A stretch of DNA of 64,000 nt from Haliotis rubra (lineage: Eukaryota): assembly GCF_003918875.1 (NCBI RefSeq), contig NW_025765914.1:310001-374000 (forward strand), read 5' to 3'. Positions 18,024-34,000 of the stretch are shown here, piece after piece. A program made the translations under genes and the position numbers. The first letter of the stretch is position 1; every line of letters begins with the position of its first letter. The notes beneath the pieces were generated by a model. That model saw only the letters and a list, made by a program, of their open reading frames with translations, did not search any database and was not told the origin of the DNA.

Positions 18024-21000
18024 ATGGCGGACCGAATACCCAGAATGCGTCTGAGGAGCAGTTACAACATGCCTATGCTTGGGTTGGGAACGAACAACTG
18101 TTCCAAGGTTTGTGGTGTTTTTGGATTATCTTAGCTTGAACTGTTACAAAATGGACCCAATATCCTACTCAATACAGTATTCCGAATAGACAAGACAATT
18201 TAGTAGATAAAGACGCATATGGCCCAAAATGCAGACCTGTAGCAGTTACTTTTCTGAGGGCTGTAATTAACACCTACCAGAAGGTTGAAGTTGAGAATAT
18301 AATGTGTAATTTTAGCATAAGGTTGACAAATACATGCATGGAAATATAGTATTCATTAAAATTGGTCTATCAAATGCTATTAACCCTATTTCTTGTCTTT
18401 TGCACATAAATTCTGTATTTCTTGAGTGTTAATTATAATTACACAAGTGTTTAATGCGCTGCCAATTCTGACATATTAACTAACATACATCATTTTGCTA
18501 GATGTATATGCATCAATACAAGCAAAATATGAGTTTCATCTTTTTTGTACATTAAGTGCATTATTGTCTCTGTCATCAGTCTAATATTGCCTCATCTTAT
18601 TGCTGTAAAACATATTCTCAGATGTAGTGGAATATCAATCCACGGATATGTTTCCATTTGTAAAACTGTCTTACATAAAATCTCGTTGGAACATTTATGA
18701 GAAGTGTGCAGTGAGGAACACCAATATTGTTTAGGAATGTGAAAAGTCTGGTTTTAGATAATCTGATAAAAGTTGCAGTATTCCCAAAATTTTAGCTTAT
18801 CCATGTGAAACAAAACCCAAACTGAAATTGAACATGTTTGACATGTGGAGCCAATGTGACCCTCCCAGCGTCATGAAAAGACTTTAACATTAAATAGCAT
18901 TGTGAGATAGCATATTTCTATCAAGAGTATTTAATCTGCACCACTACTTAGCTTCCCCTGGCATGTATGCCAGCTGAAGTGGAGCTCTACCACATTCACC
19001 AAGGACCAAATTATTGTACTCATACTAACCTTCAGTAATTTTTTGCAACTTTTATCTGAACATTTTCAACCGTTCTATGGTATTTTATGTTCCACATTTC
19101 TGACCCACTGTTGGTCTTATCAGTGCAGTAGAAATACTGAATGTTCAGTACAATTTATATGATCTACGGTCTTTCGATACCTTTACGTTGCCATAAATGT
19201 TTTATTTGCTGATGATGCAATTCATGAATTATCTTTTGCCCAAATTACGGTGAAAATACTAAACCTAAATATTTATGAAATAACACAACCTCAAACCTTT
19301 GGCAACGAAAATACCAGTGGAAACAACATAACATTTATCTTTTTCTATACCAGTTAATTGAAGATTCAGTAGTATTAGCCACTACTGAAACATCATCCAC
19401 ACATATTAGAGTAAATAGGGCATTTGCATCAGGAGATACATAATACCTGTCTACGATATGCTCCCATCATGCTAACAAGCTGATTGATAAAGATAATAAA
19501 CAGCTGTGGACTCAATATGCAGCCTTGGCTACCAACATTACACCTGTAGTAATTAGACAATCCATTCGCAGTTCTTACACAGTCCGATAGCTTTGAATAC
19601 ATTGATGAAATAATATGAAAGATTTTCCCATTTATGCCCTCATTTAAGTCTTGTCGGTAATACATCATGCTCAACAGTATAAAACATTTTGAAAAATCAT
19701 ATGGCAAGATCAAACGGTTGGCAATGATAAAACCAACAACACTTCGCCATTGTGGGTCACACATGTGAACTGACCTTGCTTATCTTCAAACAGTATGCCA
19801 TTCATACTAAGATGTTCTACATAGTTCAGGACGTTATCTCTGCTTAATCTCAGTGGGTCAATATAGTAAGAGGGACAGTCATCAACGTCCTTATCAATAA
19901 CGTCAATAGTGGCAATTCTACCATGACTTCAGTAAATACTGGATTGTGATTGGTTAATTATAGTCATTCAGAAGTATATAATCATGTTCCAAGACAGTAT
20001 GTTTACCTCCTAAATGTTCAGAAAAGATCCAGTAAACACAAACTGGATGTATAAGTAATACATGGAGACACAGACACTAGTTAGAATATATATACTGGAC
20101 ACAAACAGTTAGGTATCATGAATATTATGGGGATTTTTTGTAGGGAACACTGATCACTCAATGATATAAATATTCATTATGTTTCATTTTCAAAACAACA
20201 TATCTTACAGAATATTAATGACTACTTACCTTTCTGTTTCAGTATGTAATATCTGGAGTGAGCAAGTGAGTTTAGTTTTACGCCGCCTTTAGCAATATTC
20301 CAGCAATATCACGACGGGGGATACCAGAAATGGGCTTCTCACATTGTACTCATGTGGGGAATCGAACCCGGGTCTTCGGCGCTCTAACTACTAGGCTACC
20401 CCGCCGGTCCTGTAATGTCTTGAAATTAGAATACAAATGATGACATTGTTATTTCCTAATTTCTGTTGCTGAATGTCGAAGTAATGTGAATGAAGTATTA
20501 TGTTGATTGTGTCAGGTCAGCGAGGTTGGGAATCTTGTGAGGACGGCCATACAGATAGGGTACCGCTACATCGACACCACCTCGGTCCACGAAACACAGC
20601 AGGAAATAGGAGACATTATTATACAACTGATCAACGATGGAAGGATAAAGCGGGAAGAGCTTTTCATTGTGGCGAAGGTAGGACGTCCAGGCAATATGCT
20701 GCAAGATGTCAAGTAATGTAGAATTATAGCAATATGTATGCAGGATGTTCTTCTTTGTGCAATTATCAAATTGATTAGGGACATGATTTCATGACGTTGC
20801 CAGCTTGTAAAATCTTGTACTTTTTGCGGTTGAGTCCTATCCGGAATTCGAATCCACACACTCAGACGACCAATTAACTTGTCAGAGGGGTACACACAAT
20901 TCGTGATATTGACTACCAGTTATCTCACTTGTTTTGAAGCCCCGTGTCTATGTGGATTAGATCGCAGACCTAGTGTGCTGAAGGTGTAGGTTCGAATCCT

Positions 21001-24000
21001 GTTTGTAACATCCCCGACATACACAGAAGAATAGTTTAGGCAAATGCGTAATCCCCTATATGATATTATATTATAGATACCCATTTTGAAAGGCATCTGT
21101 GTAATCATGAAATACTGTTCACATCAGCATAAACACATATCAGTCACGCCGTCCTAGTTGTGGCTACATTCGCATACATGTAGCTTTAAGTTACAATTAC
21201 AGATTTTCTGCCACTGTCACGAACCGGAGCAAGTCGAGCCAGAGTGCCGAATGTCACTGGAGGCCCTGAACATGGATTATATCGATCTCTATCTGTTACA
21301 GTTTCCCATGGTCCTAACAGTGAGTCAAGAACTCTTTCCTTTGTGTAAATTGTAGTCTAATTTTTTGACAGGATTGAGTATGTGATGTTTCAACAACTGT
21401 ACTTGCCTGTTGTCTTCATATAGTTGCCAGTTTTGAAATATAGGGCCTGTAAGTCTCGCGAGGCTCTACTTCCGGTACTCAGCTGGTTCCCGGCTCACTT
21501 TGCGCGCGCCAGTTTGCTATATGCAAGACGGAGCCCGGCTTACATCCGATGAGGTGAGGTGAGGTGAGGTGAGGTGAGGTGAGGTGAGGTGAGGTGAGGT
21601 GAAATAGCCCATACTTAAGCTGGTTTTATAGTGCTAGCCCACTGAGATACCATGCCGCAGTGAAGCATGAATAGCCCACTCAGACACAATATACTGACTC
21701 CGAGCCGACCAGTCCTTGTTGTACCCATTTATGCCGAGCGCCAGGCAGGGACCAACAAGTACCATATTTTAACGTCTTTTGGTATGACGCGGTCGGGGAT
21801 CGAACCCGCGACCTTCCGCTCTCCGGGCGGACGCTCTAACCACTACACCACAGAGGCGGTCGCTTACATCCGGTACAAGATTTCCGGTGACAAGCGTATA
21901 TTCAATAACCAGTTCTGATTCCAAATTGCGCGACCGCCAAAAATGACTTTACAAGACCGGACCAAGTGTACAACCATGCTTGGCCGTCACAGCTGTTGAC
22001 AGTCGTAATAGTTTGCTAATTTGGGGATGGTTAGATCGGAAATTTGTTATTTCTGAGATGATTATCGGTTCCTTACTGTCAACTGACAACCATGAGACCA
22101 TTCGTGAAGGTATGAAACGTGTTTGTCACAGTGAGGACTAAACAACGCCTCCCGAAGTGCCGTGACCTACTTACAGGCACTATTGGGCTGATTTCTCTAC
22201 ACACTTGTTTGGGTGTTGGTACTCGGTGACTCTGTCACGCGTTTTTCACTGCTTTTTTTTAACTCGCAATCTGTTACCTTAGCGATTTATCGAGACTGAT
22301 TGTTCGCTCGCTAAATATCAATTTAGTCATCGAATATTGTCAGAATATGGCTGAAATTCTTATGGCCTTAGATGAAACTCACTCACTCGAATATTGTCTA
22401 ACATACCTCTAAGCTGATACAATAGCTGCTTAGTAGTAATGAATTTCGCGTCGTATGATATAAGAGTTTGTTGTCGTCAGTCACCTGACACTTCAAGGCA
22501 TCGTCGGTGCACATATCAAGAGTGTGGTAATATTTCATAATTGCATGTAGATTGGCATTCGCAGTGAAGCGGCTGGCAAATCACAGGCATCAGATTCAAG
22601 ATTGCCCATGCCGTTGATGATGTGATAGTGTAACGGACTTATAACCAGATGGCATAATGGCTTCTAACGTCCGGTGCTTACTGTAACTAGATGGCATAAT
22701 GGCCGCTATCATCCGGTGCTTACTGTAACCAGATGGCATAATGGCTTCTAACGTCCGGTGCTTACTGTAACCAGATGGTATAATTGCCGCTATCATCCGG
22801 TGCTTACTGTAACCAGATGGCATAATAGCTTCTAACGTCCGGTGCTTATGCTTCTGGTGCTTACTGTAACCAGATGGCATAATGGCTTCTAACGTCCGGT
22901 GCTTACTGTAACCAGATGGCATAATGGCCGCTATCATCCGGTGCTTACTGTAACCAGATGGCATAATGGCTTCTAACGTCCGGTGCTTACTGTAACCAGA
23001 TGGTATAATGGCCGCTATCATCTGGTGCTTATGTGGTGCTTACTGTTTCCCCAAAATTGTCACCCATCGATATTATGACACTGTCTATTGTAGTTTTTCC
23101 GTATTATGTGTGGACATGTGTGTGTTTCCCCAGGACAAGGAGCGAACCAAGTTGACTACAACCGACTTCCTGGACACTTGGAGGGTAGGTGGCTCTACTC
23201 TACTCAGGGAGAAACAATAAACCGTAACAAGCGATACTTTTCAAATCGTGTATATTTCCAGCCAGCAAAATACAACTTGATGTACATTCCATGATACTTT
23301 GTAAGGTATTCTATGTTTATTTTCTGATGTTTTGCCCACCTGAACATAACAATGCTATCCTAGTTTGTCCATCAAGCAGATCTTGACTGTATTGCGAAAA
23401 TAGAAGCAACATCTTCCTAAGGTCACTGACGCTTTAGAGATGCCCTAAACGTTTAAACTGGTTTACTAAGGTATTGCACATTGTGACCCTTTTGGTGGAT
23501 TCTACACCAGTTAACATACTGGGCTCATGTATGACATCATTTGGTATGATACTTATACCATGCTGTTTTCTAGAAACAATGATAGACAACTGACATTGTT
23601 TGTATGTTCAGGTTCCACCTGAGTATTTTCTTTCCACCCCAACAGGCCATGGAGAAGCTGGTGGACAAGGGCCTTGTCAGGTCTGTCGGCGTCTCCAACT
23701 TCAATAAACACCAACTACCATAATGAGCATCTATGCTGCACAAAATTGTCACCCATCGATATTATGACACTGTCTATTGTAGTTTTTCCGTATTATGTGT
23801 GGACATGTGTGTGTTTCCCCAGGACAAGGAGCGAACCAAGTTGACTACAACCGACTTCCTGGACACTTGGAGGGTAGGTGGCTCTACTCTACTCAGGGAG
23901 AAACAATAAACCGTAACACGCGATACTTTTCAAATCGTGTATATTTCCAGCCAGCAAAATACAACTTGATGTACATTCCATGATACTTTGTAAGGTATTT

Positions 24001-24976
24001 TATGTTTATTTTCTGATGTTTTGCCCACCTGAACATAACAATGCTATCCTAGTTTGTCCATCAAGCAGATCTTGACTGTATTGCGAAAATAGAAGCAACA
24101 TCTTCCTAAGGTCACTGACGCTTTAGAGATGCCCTAAACGTTTAAACTAGTTTACTAAGGTATTGCACATTGTGACCCTTTTGGTGGATTCTACACCAGT
24201 TAACATACTGGGCTCATGTATGACATCATTTGGTATGATACTTATACCATGCTGTTTTCTAGAAACAATGATAGACAACTGACATTGTTTGTATGTTCAG
24301 GTTCCACCTGAGTATTTTCTTTCCACCCCAACAGGCCATGGAGAAGCTGGTGGACAAGGGCCTTGTCAGGTCTGTCGGCGTCTCCAACTTCAATAAACAC
24401 CAACTGGAGAGGATTCTCAAAATGGACGGTCTCAAGTACAAGCCTGCGAACAACCAGGTAGAAGACGTTAGGATTCAACAAAATCCATGAATAGAAATTT
24501 TGCCCCAAATAGGGAAATATATTTTCGATCTGTTGACTGGTTTCAGATGGAGATAACTCCGTCTCTGTCCCAGGACGAGCTTCTACAGTTCTCCTTGCAA
24601 AACGGCATCTCCACTACTGGCTGTGAGCCATTTGCGACTCCAGGACAAGCAAAGTGAGACTCGTCATTTACATCGAAATCATGCAAATTAACAAAACCGA
24701 GCTGCTGTAGATTTGAATAAGATTGCTGTCGTGGGTAATCTAGTCGTGTAACACGGCAAGATTCGATGTGCCGAGTAGCGTCCCTTGTGCATGCCAGGAA
24801 TATGGGTTCTAATCTATGCCATGATGGGAATCACATTCACATAAAGCTGACATTATCTGATAAACCTAAACATTTAGCAGGGCTAAAGAAAACGACCTGT
24901 ATACTGACATTCTAGACACCGCTTTGTAAGATTGTATGACTGGGTGTCTGTTATGGATCAGGCACGCATGGACTCA

Positions 24977-25008
<32 letters not shown>

Positions 25009-28000
25009 CACAAAGTGTTATTTTATGCGTAACCAATTTTATATTCTATAATAATGCCGTTACACAGTCTGCAGATTTCTGTTGCAGAATGCCCATGGAA
25101 TCGCACAGCTGCCAGGAACATCCAACAATTGCTACTATCGCAAATAAATACGGAAAATCAGCCGCACAGGTAGGTTTCTGCCCTGTTATTTTCTGTACAG
25201 GGGCGGTTGCATAAGGTGTTCAACCCCCTGCAGACATCCCTCCCACAGTCTGTGATAGATGTTGTTACTAACTATGCACTACTGATCATAATGTTTCCCT
25301 TGATAGATTTTGTTTCAACTAACTATGCACTACTGATCATAATGTTTCCCTTGATAGATTTTGTTACTAACTATGCACTACTGATCATAATGTTTCCCTT
25401 GATAGATTTTGTTTCAACTATGTACTATTGGTCCCACTGTTTCTACCCGTTAAGATCCGGGTTAGAATTGGTCTTCAGTAACCCATGCTTGGCAGAAAGT
25501 AAGAGAATCTCACGAAATACGGCACGTCGTTTGTCAACGTTAGGCGACTTTGGCTCGAACTTTTACCATTACTTGGAGACCCGTTACAATGCGGATTAGA
25601 ATTGGTCTTCAACAACCCATGCTTGTTGTAAGAGGTGACTAACGGGATCGGGTGGCCAGGCTCGCTGACTTGATTGACACATGTCATTGTATCCCAATTA
25701 CGTAGATCGAGGCTCGTGATGTTGATCCCTGGATTGTCTGGTGCGGACTCGATTATTTATAGACCGCCTACACATGCAAATTTCACGTCATACAGCCATC
25801 ATCTTTCAAGAGCGATTACTGTACAAACAACCATGGTTATGTGGAAGTGCAAGCAGTGATGCACTCTCAAAACATTCATTATTATCATATCAACATTGAT
25901 TGACTCCCATACATCTCCCAATATTTTCAATCGCAAATTACAAATGAAGTTCCCCTATATTCTAAAGAGGATATTTTGTCGTTTGCGGTGGACTACTGAA
26001 CTAAACGTTTTCTGTACACCAGGTGATCCTCAGGTGGGGCATACAGAGAGGCTATGCTGTGGTTCCCAAGGCAACGAATCCATTTTGTCTGGTCCAGAGC
26101 ATGGACGTGAGTGTCTGTGTTGGTATCTTCAATTTATCTGACCTCAGTTCCACGTGTATCAATGTGTCAGGAAAATGTAACGCTGGTGTTTTTCAATTGG
26201 CATTTGGCATTTGTGTTCATACCTTACGGTGTGCTGTTCAGTCATTTGTCAGGTTTAGAGGCTTTCTATAGGGGTACAATCCAGCTCCCTCTATAGTGAA
26301 TTATATATATACACACATACATACATGCATACACATATACTAGCCACATAAATAAACTGTGCATTGTCAAAATATTATCCCAGTTGATAAGTACGATAAC
26401 AATGTCAAAGGTACATATAAACTTTAATGGAGGGATCATGAGACCATAACAAGTCGGGAGAATTTCAATTGAAAAGTCAATCACAATGACGTCACGAGTC
26501 CACAAGCGGGACAGGAGTCAAACGACCATGTCACAAGCTCAATAACGGGTATGTCCACCATCGGCATTGAGAACAGCAGTGCATCGACGACGCATAGAGC
26601 CTATCAAACGTGCAAGGAAGGCTTGTGGGATGTCACGCCAGATTCTCTCAAGTTCTGTTGCAAGGTCAAGGACGTTATCTGGCGGATGAGGAAGACGGCG
26701 TAGACGTCGATCCATCTCGTCCCAAACATGCTCTATCGGGGAGAGATCCGGTGAATTTGCAGGCCAAGGCAGTAAGTCAACGTTGTGGAGTTGCAAGAAA
26801 TCCATAGCAACCCTTGCCGTATGAGGGCGGGCATTGTCCTGTTAGAATGTTAACCCAGGGCCATGACGTTGCAGAAAAGGAACTGGCACAGGTCGAAGAA
26901 TCTAATCCCTGTAGCCCACACCAGTTAAGTTGCCCTGAACAATCACCAAAAGAGTTCTTTGGCGTGCTGTTATTCCACCCCAAATCATCACGGAACCACC
27001 ACCAAAGCGTTTCCTCTCCAAGACACAGGCCTGTGCATAACGTTCTCTCACGCGCCTATAGGCACGTTGACGTCCATCACTATGGGAAATGTTAAACCTG
27101 GACTCATCTGTAAAAACAACATTTCTCCACCAAAACAAGGGTCTGCGGACATGATTTCGGCACCACATTCGGCGAGCTTGTCGATGACGTTGTGTCAGGA
27201 TAGGCCGTATGGCGGGACGTCGTGGTCTGATCCCGTGATGACGTAAACGTTGTCGAACTGTGTTGGGGTGGACACGGCGAAGTCCTGGGATGGTTCGGGC
27301 AGTCATCACTGCAGTCTGAAACCTGTGGCGAAGATGGGTCACCCTTATCCATATGTCCTGTCTTGGCGTTGTTACACGTGGACGTCCAGAACGTGGCCGA
27401 TCGATGACGTCATGTGTGTTCTGGTAGCATCTCACCAGTACAGAAATGGTGTTCCGGTGGCAGTGGAAATGTACAGCCACTTGTCGTTGAGACATATACC
27501 CACGGACCATCCCAATGGCCTCAAGACGTTGTGCAGACGTGAGCCTTGGCATGCTATGCGTTTCAATAGCCGTTTAATTTTTTGAACGATCGCAAGGGCA
27601 GGGATTGAGCTTTCCAAAGTGGCAGTATTATGTGGCATTCGTTTGCTCTGTTTCTCTTTCGTTGAATGCACGTGCAACAACGTAGTGCACGTCTCAAGGA
27701 CGAACCCACTGACGTCACGGAACGTGGCACGTGCATGCATGTTGGATACATGTCACTAATCTCTGAGTTTGAATCCTTATGTGTCTACACAGGTTTGATA
27801 AATTTAGATTTTACAATTTTTGTATGCACATTTTCTTTATGTGCCTAGTATAGTTGGGGAGGAGTTTTGGCAAATGATCTTCAATACAATTTGCTCTTTT
27901 GTCTTGTACCATATGTTTCCTTGTTTCATCAGGTGAACAATTACCTTCCTTTCACATGTGTTTGTGGTGGGGAGTGGGGACCACCGGTGGGCAAGATACG

Positions 28001-28394
28001 CTCACCTTATTGCGAACTATCTCACGGTGATTCATGTCATGTATATGGATTTTTATGATTATGGAAAAGGCTTTGGCGTATTTACAATAATATTCCAAAA
28101 AGCTTTAGTAGACTGTGTCACGCACCTCATAGAAGACTGTCTCATGTATGGGAGCGTTGACTCAAAATGGGATTAAAGTATATAAACTTTCATGTAAACG
28201 AATGCAATAGTACCAATACCCTGTGTTGGAAAGTGCAGAGAGACAGTAATCTTTACTCAAATTTGGTTAAAAAAGTACTGACTAGATATTGTTCTTTGTT
28301 TCAGATATTCAACTTTGAACTCTGCACGGATGACATGCAGGCAATAAAAGCTCTGGACAAGGATACAGAGTACATTTCAACAAATACCAAATAA
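18024..28394 (+). CDS. Aldo-keto reductase (AKR1-like), ~299 aa, 9 coding exons, non-canonical active site
   Basis: Exons 18024-18107 (MPMLGLGT), 20516-20677 (GYRYIDT...REELFIVAK), 21203-21319 ([11 protein letters not shown]), 23134-23184 or 23823-23873 (DFLDTWR), 24335-24457 ([20 protein letters not shown]...PANNQ), 24547-24653, 25088-25169 (KYGKSAAQ), 26023-26106 ([16 protein letters not shown]) and 28305-28394 (IFNFEL...*). All introns are GT-AG with a continuous frame. Confidence 0.93.
18560..19900 (-). mobile_element. Decayed LINE ORF2 (reverse transcriptase plus C-terminal region) in AKR intron 1
   Basis: DFSKCF...[14 protein letters not shown]...[21 protein letters not shown] are RT motifs, with a degenerate CVDD (YADD box) and a downstream [10 protein letters not shown]-type motif. 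Frameshifted. Confidence 0.8.
20257..20406 (-). mobile_element. SINE family B copy
   Basis: Matches the consensus. Other copies at about 29165-29362(+), 31105-31232(-), 46835-47010(-), 50100-50233(-), 50910-51030(+), 58127-58284(+) and 60671-60748(+). Confidence 0.8.
21441..22182. mobile_element. Non-autonomous DNA transposon with TAG...CTA termini hosting a nested SINE
   Basis: TAGGGCCTGTAAGT at 21441 versus ACTTACAGGCACTA ending at 22182 (14-bp TIR, 1 mismatch). Confidence 0.6.
21549..21861 (-). mobile_element. tRNA-derived SINE family C, full length, (ACCTC)n tail, 11-bp TSD
   Basis: Minus strand reads GACCGCCTCTGTGGTGTAGTGG (box A)...GGTTCGATCCCC (box B). TSD GCTTACATCCG at 21538-21548 and 21862-21872. 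A degraded second copy lies at about 52049-52280(+). Confidence 0.88.
22640..23045 (+). repeat. 42-bp minisatellite with alternating A/B units (84-bp higher order)
   Basis: CCGGTGCTTACTGTAACCAGATGGCATAATGGC followed alternately by TTCTAACGT or CGCTATCAT. Confidence 0.9.
23052..24405 (+). repeat. 665-bp near-perfect tandem duplication covering AKR exon 4 and the 5' part of exon 5
   Basis: Copies 23052-23716 and 23741-24405 (offset 689), with a 24-nt filler at 23717-23740. Confidence 0.92.
26338..27850 (-). mobile_element. Tc1/mariner (DD34E) element, full length, in AKR intron 8
   Basis: Imperfect ~27-bp TIRs TACTAG(C/G)CACATAAA.AAA.TGTGCAT; TA target duplication at 26336-26337 and 27851-27852. 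Confidence 0.92.
26539..27552 (-). pseudogene. Tc1-like transposase (337 codons) with two in-frame stops
   Basis: Paired-like HTH and [31 protein letters not shown] (34 residues between the second D and E). Stops TAG 26902-26904 and TAA 26842-26844; no frameshift. Confidence 0.92.
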
Positions 28395-31005: not shown

Positions 31006-34000
31006 ATGAATGCTCGTTTCACAAAGACATGGTTAAAAGCAGTTCTATTTCACACGCTTATCGGAATATGGCTGTTTCCCGTGAAAGGTAAGTTGTCTCT
31101 CTTTTAGGAAATATTTCCGCAATACCACATCTGGGGACGCAAGAAATGGACTTCACCCATTGTACCCGTGGAGGGAAACAAACCCGAACCTACGGTGTGA
31201 CGAGCGAACGCTTCAACAACTTGTCTACCGCCGTACCTATTGACATGGAGCTATGATAGTTATGAGTACCATTATTGTTTTATATGGCCTGCCATGATAA
31301 ATACCGATGTGTTAATAGAGACACCACACAATCACACTTTGAAAACAGGACGAAAGTCCGCAGTATTTAAATTACCGTAGAAGTGAAAAAGGAGAAAACA
31401 CATGCATAGGTACGACCTCATCAATGTTAGGTGCAGCTGTTCTCAATGACAGTTATTTTTTGAAATATTTAACAAATTTTGACATTAGTTAATGAAGGAT
31501 ATTAAAGGCTCACTATAACGCTGACATTAATAATCGGCGTCAAGTGTTTGATCAAATTCCATCCAAAGGCAGTTTGAGTGATCACTTAAGACACAGAAGA
31601 TGACGATTATCACATGCATGTATAGAAAAATCCTTTTGTCATATAGAGAATTTAGAACCAATGTTTAGGCAGATTGTTTCTGTTCAGAGTCAAACTGTTT
31701 TGACAAATAGTGCCTAACCCCCAAGAGCTATTCCATCACCTAGGGATAACATTTCAACGAAAACCGAGAGAAAATGCTTTTTCTGTCTTCTGTAAAGATG
31801 AAACATTTATGTATATTTGTGTTTTATGTATAAAAGTACTTTTTCGGAAGTATAAAGAAACGCTCGTAAAATATATCTTATCAGGAAGTATATGCTGAAG
31901 GTGGCGTAAGCATCTCTGTCTTATGCTTAGTGTATGACCAAATGGTTAGACAACTACTGGTTTCCATTGCCGTTACGTGTTACGAATAACACTCATGTCT
32001 TCTCTTCAACTTTAGGACTTTGGAGTTCAAACTTAATCTTTCTAAGTAAAGCTTAAAACAGGGGTGATATCTCAAAAGGATACATTAAGTCGATGATCTA
32101 GATTACCAGTTGTCCAACTTCCACTTTTGTGAAAGACTAACTTCGTGCTAGCAATTAGGTGCCTGGCTGAGAGTGTGGGTTCGAATCCCGGACGAGACTG
32201 AACCCAACAAAAGTACAGTATACTATAATCTGTAAATTACTGAGAAAGTGTAATCCCAAATACAACATGTGCACATTTTGTTGTGATCCATGAGTGAGTG
32301 ACTTATGTCGGATTCCTTGTCCGATACTTATACGGAAACACATACTTGGGATGCCATTAATCCAAGATTTATGGTTTGATCTTCAAGGATTTCACTTGTG
32401 GATTGAATGTTCACGATAATGATCGTGGACACGGACCACTGCCAGATGCCAGTCTGGATTAGGGACCACGTGGTAGCTGACCCGTGAAGATCCGGGTTAG
32501 AATTGGTCTTCAGCAACCCATGCTTGGTGTAAGAGGCGACTAAGAGGCGATCGATGCTCATGCTGTTGATCACTGAATTGTCTGGTCCAGACTATTTCCA
32601 GACTGCCCTCATGCAGCTTGCTTATATGCTGAGTGCGGCGTGAAACAAACAAACGACCAAACAAACACAACCTCGTGGTAGCCAGGCGCCGAAATATGCT
32701 GTGTAGAGTTACGTTCCCCACACCACCTCTGAGTCGTACTGTGCTCTGTGATACACTGCTGGAAGCACGTCTCCAAACACGGTTTACTGAAATGCAGACA
32801 AACTCGTCACTGAGGATGGTGAAACGCCATTGTGGCGGTGACTGCTGAACCTTTGACGACTTATTGACTCTACACTTCATGATGACCAATCGACGACGGT
32901 ATGAATACTTTAGCATTTAACAGGTCAATGACTTAATAGCCTTTCTGGTGACCTTGAACACTTTTGTTATAAAACAGCCAAGGCATGGCTTCACATCACA
33001 GTGCAAATCCCATAAACTTGGTGAGTGAGTGAGTTTAGTTTTACGCCGCACTCAGCAATATTCAAGCTATGTGGCGTCCTGTAAATAACCAAGTCTGGAC
33101 CAGACAATCCAGTGATCAACAACATGAGCATCGATCTACGCAATTGGGAACCGATGACATGTGTCAACCAAGTCAGCGAGTCTGACCACCCGATCCCGTT
33201 AGTCGCCTCTTACAAGCATGGGTTACTTAAGATCAATATTCTAACCCGGATCTTCACAGGTCATAAACTTGGTATCACACAAATTGTTTCGATGCGATCA
33301 CGGGGAACAAATATAGATCTCCAGCTTAACCACTGACTAATGCGTGACATTTGAGCGCTAACGTCATGTATTGAATCACCACGGTGACGTCTGTTGTTAC
33401 TACGCAACAATCCGACGAAAAAAGAATGACCCAAATCACTATAACGGGTTCCACGTGCATTGTTCTCGAGTTCTTTCACCCGCAAATTTCATTATCGTTT
33501 ATAGTCTGTTTGCAGTTAAAACGTACCAATGAATTTCACTTTAAACAAAAAAGTAAATCAAATAAAGTGAAATTAAGATTGCGAATCCTCATAATTTTAC
33601 CTTGCCAACTGAACATTTAAATCTCAAAAATTTATTCAAATTAGGATAAAAGTTGTTTAACAAATGATCATAGATTCAAATCGCTATTACTGGTTTTCAT
33701 TACAATGGGGTAAGCGCAATAGTTGGAACAGTGAAACAAATGCACGTGCGGTACGTGAAGAGCGTTAACTTATAACAACCCTTGTCTTTTTCTGTGTTTC
33801 ATTTGATGTGCATACCCCCTTGTAATACAAACCAATAATAGCCATGCGAGACTATGATCGTTTGTTAAACAACTTTTATCCTAAGTCGAATAAAATTCTG
33901 AGATTTTAATGTTCAATTGGCAAGGTAAAATCATGAGGATTCGCAGTCTTAATTTCACTTTATTTGCTTTACCTTTTGGTTTAAACTGACATTCATCGGT

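Follow-up and report, generated by a model that had tools for sequence, protein, structure and literature searches.

A Haliotis rubra aldo-keto reductase gene with a D-H-K-Q tetrad and an eroded cofactor site: a candidate lineage-specific pseudoenzyme

The window analyzed here is a 64,000-nucleotide stretch of the genome of the blacklip abalone, Haliotis rubra, and the subject of this report is a gene on its + strand, at positions 18024-28394, encoding an aldo-keto reductase (AKR) superfamily protein in which two of the four catalytic tetrad residues are replaced. Assembling the exons from the sequence yielded nine of them, with AG/GT at every border, and a coding sequence of 900 nucleotides specifying 299 amino acids with zero internal stops, in agreement with the nine clean exons of the initial annotation. 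The product matches, residue for residue, the model XP_046565886.1 that NCBI generated automatically as “AKR1B1-like [Haliotis rubra],” and this gene has thus been annotated previously, by name alone. A tblastn search found no second AKR copy in the window. Residue numbers are those of human AKR1B1 (aldose reductase), transferred through the alignment of the Haliotis asinina orthologue with PDB entries; in the numbering of the abalone protein itself, the tetrad reads Asp48-His53-Lys82-Gln115. Sequencing runs (X1, X7, X9, and X13) were consulted as Logan contigs. The exons are as follows.

18024-18107, + strand: exon 1, amino acids 1-28; contains GLGTNN, in which Trp20 is replaced by Asn (AAC, 18093-18095) and Lys21 by Asn
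20516-20677, + strand: exon 2, amino acids 29-82; Asp43 kept (20573-20575), Tyr48 replaced by His (CAC, 20588-20590), Glu51 by Gln (20597-20599), Lys77 kept (20675-20677); covered by two contigs, X1 record 1 (spliced RNA) and X7 record 16 (DNA)
21203-21319, + strand: exon 3, amino acids 83-121; Trp79 replaced by Phe (21206-21208), His110 by Gln (CAG, 21299-21301)
23823-23873, + strand: exon 4 (second copy), amino acids 122-138, after the short loop A
24335-24457, + strand: exon 5, amino acids 139-179; carboxamide anchors Ser159 and Asn160 (24383-24388) and Gln183 (24455-24457) kept
24547-24653, + strand: exon 6, amino acids 180-215; contains TGCEPFA, in which Tyr209 is replaced by Cys (TGT, 24622-24624) and Ser210 by Glu; loop B follows, with low model confidence
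25088-25169, + strand: exon 7, amino acids 215-242
26023-26106, + strand: exon 8, amino acids 243-270; Lys262 kept (26068-26070), Ser263 replaced by Ala (26071-26073), Arg268 by Cys (26086-26088), Asn272 by Ser (26098-26100), at the adenosine 2'-phosphate end of the cofactor site
28305-28394, + strand: exon 9, amino acids 271-299 and the TAA stop codon; 1-nucleotide deletion at ~28363

We searched the H. rubra exons singly against the AKRs of the PDB and made the full-length alignment with the H. asinina orthologue. In exon 2, the His encoded at 20588-20590 aligned with the catalytic Tyr48, while Asp43 and Lys77 were kept; in exon 3, the Gln encoded at 21299-21301 aligned with the catalytic His110 (DLYLLQFP versus DLYLIHFP); and exon 5 was unchanged across GVSNF…NQ. 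The H. asinina orthologue aligned end to end with human aldose reductase, giving the same placement of residues and carrying the same His and Gln, so that both replacements proposed in the initial annotation were borne out, as was its list of retained residues (Asp43, Lys77, the SN of GVSNF, Gln183, and Lys262). The tyrosine is the general acid of the AKR mechanism (PMC4310174). The H. rubra protein therefore has the tetrad state D-H-K-Q and lacks the D-Y-K-H of a competent AKR. Relatives were gathered by searching first with exon 2 and then, in a word search, with the H. asinina protein; among 150 full-length relatives, D-Y-K-H was present in 138, whereas D-H-K-Q occurred solely in the H. rubra protein and its H. 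asinina orthologue, which argues that the change did not arise by chance.

The two catalytic codons were also examined in an Illumina DNA contig (X7 record 16) that spans 20450-21473 and, being ~3% divergent from the window, represents another haplotype or individual. None of its 27 itemized differences falls at either codon; five further differences are not itemized and probably lie in a repeat at 21410-21473. With both codons free of listed differences in this contig, and with the same two residues encoded in the H. asinina genome, which was assembled independently, sequencing error was excluded. The second haplotype differs within exons 2 and 3 at positions 20527, 20536, 21208, 21209, 21220, 21235, 21307, and 21314, and most of these exon changes recur in the RNA contig of run X1. 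Three of the changes alter amino acids in the 39 codons of exon 3 (F84L, C85G, and L120I); since Gly85 matches the paralogues, it is the window allele that is derived at residue 85.

The cofactor site is altered as well. In a position table built on aldose reductase, the H. rubra protein showed Trp20Asn, Trp79Phe, Tyr209Cys, Ser210Glu, Ser263Ala, Arg268Cys, and Asn272Ser, with Ser159, Asn160, Gln183, and Lys262 retained. In the complex of human aldose reductase with NADP+, the 2'-phosphate is contacted by Ser263, Thr265, Lys262, and Val264 N, the adenine ribose by Arg268, the adenine by Asn272 and Glu271, the pyrophosphate by Lys21, Ser210, Ser214, and backbone atoms, the nicotinamide ribose by Asp43, and the carboxamide by Ser159, Asn160, and Gln183 (PMC5056380, Table 3). 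Only 5 of the 13 contacting side chains (Lys262, Asp43, Gln183, Ser159, and Asn160) are identical in the H. rubra protein, which thus falls short of the residue set expected for NADPH binding. Ser263Ala, Arg268Cys, and Asn272Ser were found in none of the tetrad-intact paralogues compared. Furthermore, the H. asinina orthologue has Gly in place of Lys262, and 3 of the 8 positions of the pyrophosphate loop (209-216) are not the same in the H. rubra and H. asinina proteins. Other replacements are shared more widely: Lys21Asn, Asp216Gly, Thr265Asn, and Glu271Gln also occur in tetrad-intact abalone paralogues. The motifs GLGTN, TGCEPFA, VPKA, and CLVQS are as first described, but the Glu271Gln within CLVQS is clade-wide and not a specific loss; likewise, the Phe at position 111, initially counted as a lost Trp, is standard in the abalone clade and in AKR1C.

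Despite these changes, the fold is predicted to be preserved. The protein matched Pfam PF00248 with 137.5 bits (cutoff, 24) over profile positions 2-290 of 291, and an AlphaFold2 model had a mean predicted local distance difference test score (pLDDT) of 90.5 and a predicted template modeling score (pTM) of 0.90, with eight strand/helix repeats and weakness only at loop B (~211-220) and in the last five residues. Foldseek aligned this predicted model with human aldose reductase at template modeling (TM) scores of 0.91 to 0.93. We conclude that the protein is a member of the AKR superfamily with a predicted (alpha/beta)8 barrel. As for expression, X1 record 1 (541 nucleotides) joins exons 2 and 3 exactly at the predicted borders, and the depth of its later bins is consistent with one exon 4 followed by the start of exon 5; this points to a spliced transcript, though the depth is low and the RNA status of the run is a guess. 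Contigs covering exons 5 and 6 in X9 and X13 were set aside because they are ~92% identical to the window and probably derive from paralogues or other species.

The C terminus is truncated, as the initial annotation had proposed. The paralogues consist of ten exons, of which the last encodes …DHPFYPFEK, and both the exon 9 donor and exon 10 are lost in all four abalone orthologues. In addition, a 1-nucleotide deletion in exon 9 (~28363), present in H. rubra and H. asinina and in neither the paralogues nor the North Pacific orthologues, shifts the frame after …ALDK, 10 codons ahead of the H. rubra stop. The earlier description of the gene as intact thus holds for the reading frame and the splice sites but not for the C terminus, which is cut by this deletion common to H. 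asinina and deprived of the ancestral tenth exon. A candidate remnant of exon 10 (HPLYPWRE, 31154-31177; tblastn E value, ~0.1) was rejected as it resembles a high-copy short interspersed nuclear element (SINE)-like repeat in intron 1.

Proteins are assigned to an AKR family at 40% or more identity to its members and to a subfamily at more than 60%. The “AKR1B1-like” genes formed an abalone-only clade in our tree (support, 100/99) whose members are 36 to 43% identical to nonabalone AKR1B and AKR1-like proteins; the H. rubra protein is 38 to 40% identical to human AKR1B1, and both ranges sit around the AKR1 family threshold. Within this clade, the H. rubra gene grouped (100/100) with XP_067656268.1 from H. 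asinina, which is 86% identical to it, XP_071090341.1 from Haliotis cracherodii, and XP_046360548.2 from Haliotis rufescens, and the comparison of orthologues covers these four abalone species. Synteny agrees with this grouping. A TIR-domain gene lies upstream in H. rubra (within the window) and in H. asinina, and downstream of the AKR gene in H. asinina, H. cracherodii, and H. rufescens, there is a gene for a 232-amino-acid protein, called LamG/Pif-like in the initial annotation; the full order of TIR-domain gene, AKR gene, and 232-amino-acid gene is common to H. rubra (window positions 4860-39372) and H. asinina, and its AKR and 232-amino-acid part is also kept in the other two species. The H. 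asinina paralogues that could be located (P0155, P0158, and P0163) cluster ~1 Mb away on the same chromosome.

The orthologues do not share all of the replacements. Those of H. cracherodii and H. rufescens keep D-Y-K-H, and yet all four have Cys209, Ala or Gly at 263, and Cys268, and lack Trp79 and exon 10. Among the four, only H. rubra and H. asinina have Tyr48His, Glu51Gln, His110Gln, Asn272Ser, and the frameshift, while Asp43, Lys77, Ser159, Asn160, and Gln183 are invariant across the orthologues. This distribution indicates that the active site was dismantled stepwise, such that Tyr209, Ser263, Arg268, Trp79, and the C-terminal exon were lost first, in the ancestor of all four orthologues, and Tyr48, His110, Glu51, and Asn272 in a second step on the stem leading to H. 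rubra and H. asinina. As the canonical residues are those of the paralogues, the direction of change follows without ancestral reconstruction. The loss was therefore not concerted, as had been suggested initially: changes to the cofactor site and the C-terminal exon preceded those to the catalytic pair. Of 85 columns conserved in at least 85% of 94 outside AKR1s, the H. rubra protein departs at 23, the H. asinina protein at 20, the North Pacific orthologues at 18, and the paralogues at 6 to 14; Pfam Aldo_ket_red scores descend likewise, from 191 bits for a canonical paralogue through 168 for the H. cracherodii orthologue to 137.5 for H. rubra.

Two further H. asinina paralogues, P0163 (D-F-K-Q; locus L005, 10001-17854) and P0164 (D-F-K-H), form a separate branch (96/95). 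The catalytic Tyr was lost there independently, by replacement with Phe, and in P0163 the His was also replaced by Gln. Both retain exon 10; P0163 keeps residues 209, 262, 263, 268, and 272, and P0164 has Lys262Met and Arg268His.

The initial annotation had proposed collecting orthologues and comparing nonsynonymous and synonymous divergence (dN and dS; omega = dN/dS). A splice-aware matcher was applied to the genomic loci to obtain exact coding sequences. Branch values are nonnegative least-squares fits to pairwise NG86 distances, bootstrapped by codon, and are thus coarser than those of a codon branch model. Pairwise omega between H. rubra and H. asinina was 0.23 to 0.27, well below 1, at a dS of 0.24 to 0.28, with 41.5 nonsynonymous and 43.5 synonymous differences over 681 and 189 sites, respectively (binomial P = 5.5e-9 versus neutrality). 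Because both proteins are D-H-K-Q, this value measures selection after the loss of the catalytic pair. Omega was 0.12 on the H. asinina tip, 0.24 on the stem of the orthogroup, and 0.30 (confidence interval [CI], 0.17 to 0.61) on the stem of H. rubra and H. asinina, where this value gave no sign of a gene-wide burst of positive selection. H. cracherodii versus H. rufescens gave 0.46 from few changes. The 290 shared codons contain neither an internal stop nor a frameshift, and in all four species the reading frame is open and the 16 splice sites are preserved. By the usual marks of a pseudogene, then, the gene does not look like one: it lacks internal stops, its splice sites are canonical, omega is well below 1, and the sole frameshift is at the extreme C terminus and common to H. 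asinina. The columns that are conserved across the superfamily evolve in the orthogroup at 0.58 to 0.63 of the rate of the other columns, compared with 0.17 to 0.35 in most pairs of intact paralogues; this comparison is suggestive only, as the pairs are nonindependent and one intact pair, P0156/P0158 (0.55), overlaps the values of the orthogroup.

Taken together, these results lead us to favor, by a little over an even chance, the view that the H. rubra gene encodes a lineage-specific AKR pseudoenzyme that is folded, transcribed, and kept by selection for another job, its barrel being used for binding and not for turnover; we favor it because the protein is conserved despite the expected loss of the canonical chemistry. 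Under this proposal, an AKR of an abalone-specific AKR1-type expansion would have lost canonical NADPH-dependent carbonyl reduction, with the cofactor site and C-terminal loop eroded first and the catalytic pair lost afterwards. The proton donor, the carbonyl-orienting His, the nicotinamide-stacking Tyr209, and the C-terminal substrate loop are all gone, while the nicotinamide anchors survive, and the retained role would be noncatalytic, with the open top of the (alpha/beta)8 barrel binding a small molecule or a partner. Given the missing Tyr, His, cofactor contacts, and substrate loop, and the established AKR mechanism, canonical carbonyl reduction is expected to be lost or to be down by orders of magnitude, and NADPH affinity and hydride transfer are probably severely reduced. 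As far as the sequence can tell, the protein has the attributes of a pseudoenzyme, in that essential catalytic residues are lacking and the gene appears to be both selected and expressed, with the H. rubra tip poorly resolved and the RNA depth low. The non-enzymatic role or changed chemistry put forward initially is thus supported by the predicted retention of the fold, the lost tetrad, the D-H-K-Q state shared with H. asinina, omega below 1, and splicing, but recent relaxation in H. rubra is still compatible with the C-terminal frameshift and the omega of its tip. If the pseudoenzyme reading holds, the automatic name “AKR1B1-like” claims more than the protein of XP_046565886.1 can do.

Several observations weigh against the pseudoenzyme reading. 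On the H. rubra tip, omega was 0.68 (CI, 0.24 to 8.1) with a dS of only 0.05, and a control paralogue pair from the same two species, P0156/P0158, gave 0.13 to 0.17, so that the 0.23 to 0.27 of the orthologues is higher. The RNA support consists of one contig with a depth of 3.9 from the run of guessed RNA status, and a second run of the same study as X1 yielded no contig for the AKR gene. The frameshifted C terminus of H. rubra and H. asinina and the lost exon look like early decay. Moreover, the retention of Asp43, Lys77, Ser159, Asn160, and Gln183 leaves room for some nicotinamide-cofactor binding or catalysis, and the Y48H variant of human aldose reductase studied by Bohren et al. in 1994 reportedly retains slight activity.

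The alternative that survives best, which we consider possible but on the unlikely side, is that the protein is still an enzyme with a changed chemistry or cofactor. Here, His48, together with Asp43 and Lys77, would act in acid/base catalysis and Gln110 would reshape the oxyanion site, and the loss of 2'-phosphate contacts would turn the preference away from NADPH, toward NADH or a cofactor that binds more weakly and exchanges faster. The invariance of those five residues in all of the orthologues and the persistence of purifying selection are consistent with this idea, as is the location of the losses at 263, 268, and 272 at the adenosine 2'-phosphate end, which discriminates NADPH from NADH; AKR1D1, in which replacement of the His goes together with another reaction, also has structures among the top PDB matches. 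However, Cys at 209, a pyrophosphate loop that differs at 3 of 8 positions, and Lys262Gly in H. asinina look like relaxed constraint on the cofactor site. The relative rate of the superfamily-conserved columns, which is raised over that of most intact pairs (with the one exception given above), also counts against a changed chemistry. The C-terminal substrate loop is missing, and the other members of the set of 150 relatives include no natural AKR that carries His in place of the Tyr.

Rather unlikely, in our estimate, is that the gene is becoming a pseudogene, at least in H. rubra, a duplicate having lost its function stepwise with the intact frame as a leftover. The losses are indeed cumulative, from exon 10 through cofactor and catalytic residues to the frameshifted C terminus, and the tip omega, the three amino acid differences in 39 codons of exon 3 on the second haplotype, and the low RNA depth all fit decay. 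So do annotated in-frame isoforms in H. asinina (P0152) and H. cracherodii (P0154) that omit exon 3 or 4, which encode core barrel strands, and that hint at imprecise splicing of the gene in these other species. Against decay stand the low pairwise omega at a dS of ~0.25 to 0.28 accumulated after D-H-K-Q was fixed, the low omega of the H. asinina branch, and the undisrupted codons and splice sites of all four species; errors in the Nanopore assembly, moreover, would inflate dN on the H. rubra tip. A bolder idea, to which we attach slightly less credence still, is that the rebuilt pocket is a new site in which His53, the lineage-specific cysteines at the former Tyr209 and Arg268, and the NNCS after the GLGT turn bind another ligand or a metal or support a reaction that is NADH dependent or needs no cofactor; its origin would lie in Indo-Pacific/Australasian abalones, in an AKR expansion that has lost the catalytic Tyr at least twice. 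Lastly, it is very improbable, and already effectively refuted by the Illumina contig and by the His and Gln of the independent H. asinina assembly, that the two codons are errors of the Nanopore-based assembly, even with a suspicious tandem duplicate (689-bp period) in the window.

That duplicate and a transposon are the other features placed within the span of the gene.

23058-23717, + strand: extra tandem copy, 656/660 (99.4%) identical to 23747-24406, with a period of 689 bp
26539-27552, − strand: broken Tc1/mariner-type transposon in intron 8, with open reading frames of 216 and 88 amino acids that match HTH_Tnp_Tc3_2 and DDE_3; outside the gene product

The tandem copy runs from the end of intron 3 through exon 4 and intron 4 into exon 5, of which it takes in the first 72 nucleotides, and it leaves the protein unaffected. 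Because an Illumina contig (X7 record 20) passes directly from 22696 to 23717, omitting 22697-23716, the copy is probably an assembly artifact or a haplotype-specific duplication. It adjoins a minisatellite in intron 3 (22642-23033) with ~9 units of 42 nucleotides and an 84-nucleotide higher-order unit. Other simple or tandem repeats are (TGAGG)n at 21550-21602, (GCAC)n at 24962-25009, and a 48-nucleotide tandem repeat at 25253-25427. Very-high-copy SINE-like repeats with tRNA-like ends lie at ~21600-21990 and 25440-25830 and also at 20262-20400; summed over contigs, their depth climbs into the millions in the DNA run and, in putative RNA runs from two organisms, into the tens of thousands.

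If the pseudoenzyme reading is true, these genes would constitute a dated, stepwise natural case of an AKR becoming a pseudoenzyme, with the H. cracherodii and H. rufescens orthologues, whose cofactor site is eroded but whose tetrad is intact, as the intermediate stage, those of H. rubra and H. asinina as the final one, and intact paralogues alongside them in these genomes. They would offer a comparative set for asking what goes first in a retired oxidoreductase, cofactor binding or catalysis, and a natural protein that recombines the classical aldose reductase mutation sites Tyr48, His110, and Arg268. The significance is limited in that pseudoenzymes are common in expanded enzyme families. 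What is new here is the D-H-K-Q tetrad, the stepwise way in which it came about, and its maintenance by selection; reuse of an AKR with an altered site was already known, and a literature search for AKR pseudoenzymes returned almost nothing specific.

Nearest in kind are AKRs with altered or nonclassical sites: Kv-beta (AKR6), frog rho-crystallin, and AKR1D1 (His to Glu) reuse the same barrel and are related to the H. rubra protein only at the level of the superfamily. Kv-beta and rho-crystallin still bind NADPH, whereas in the H. rubra protein, the cofactor site itself is eroded. A further analogue is the AKR expansion of Haemonchus contortus, in which D-Y-K-H is present in 17 of 22 AKRs and AKR16, AKR21, and AKR22 are apparently full length without it (PMC11296255); again, there is no relation beyond the superfamily. 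In Haliotis discus hannai, HdRed, a reductase of alginate-derived DEH (Mochizuki et al. 2015), is an active AKR-superfamily enzyme with the catalytic tetrad (PMC8778563), showing that abalone AKRs serve algal-sugar metabolism.

Closer to the gene itself, P0163 and P0164 are alike in having lost the catalytic Tyr within the same expansion and unlike in carrying Phe in place of His at that position and in keeping exon 10. The tetrad-intact paralogues P0155 and P0156 (~311 amino acids, 10 exons) share with the H. rubra gene the clade, the structure of exons 1 to 9, the short loop A, and 61 to 66% identity, but they keep D-Y-K-H, Tyr209, Ser263, Arg268, Asn272, and exon 10. Compared with human AKR1B1 (PDB 1ADS and 1US0), the H. 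rubra protein is alike in its barrel, at the TM scores and identity given above, and in Asp43, Lys77, Ser159, Asn160, Gln183, and Lys262; it differs by Tyr48His, His110Gln, Trp20Asn, Trp79Phe, Tyr209Cys, Ser263Ala, Arg268Cys, and Asn272Ser, by a loop A that is ~16 residues shorter (as in the whole abalone clade), and by the absence of the C-terminal loop. The top two PDB matches of the H. asinina orthologue were engineered forms of the human enzyme, Y48H (2ACU) and apo R268A (1XGD), which rank first because the orthologue carries His48 and lacks Arg268. Each of these two carries one mutation made in the laboratory and is otherwise an intact enzyme, whereas the abalone changes are natural, multiple, and fixed in two species, and are accompanied by His110Gln.

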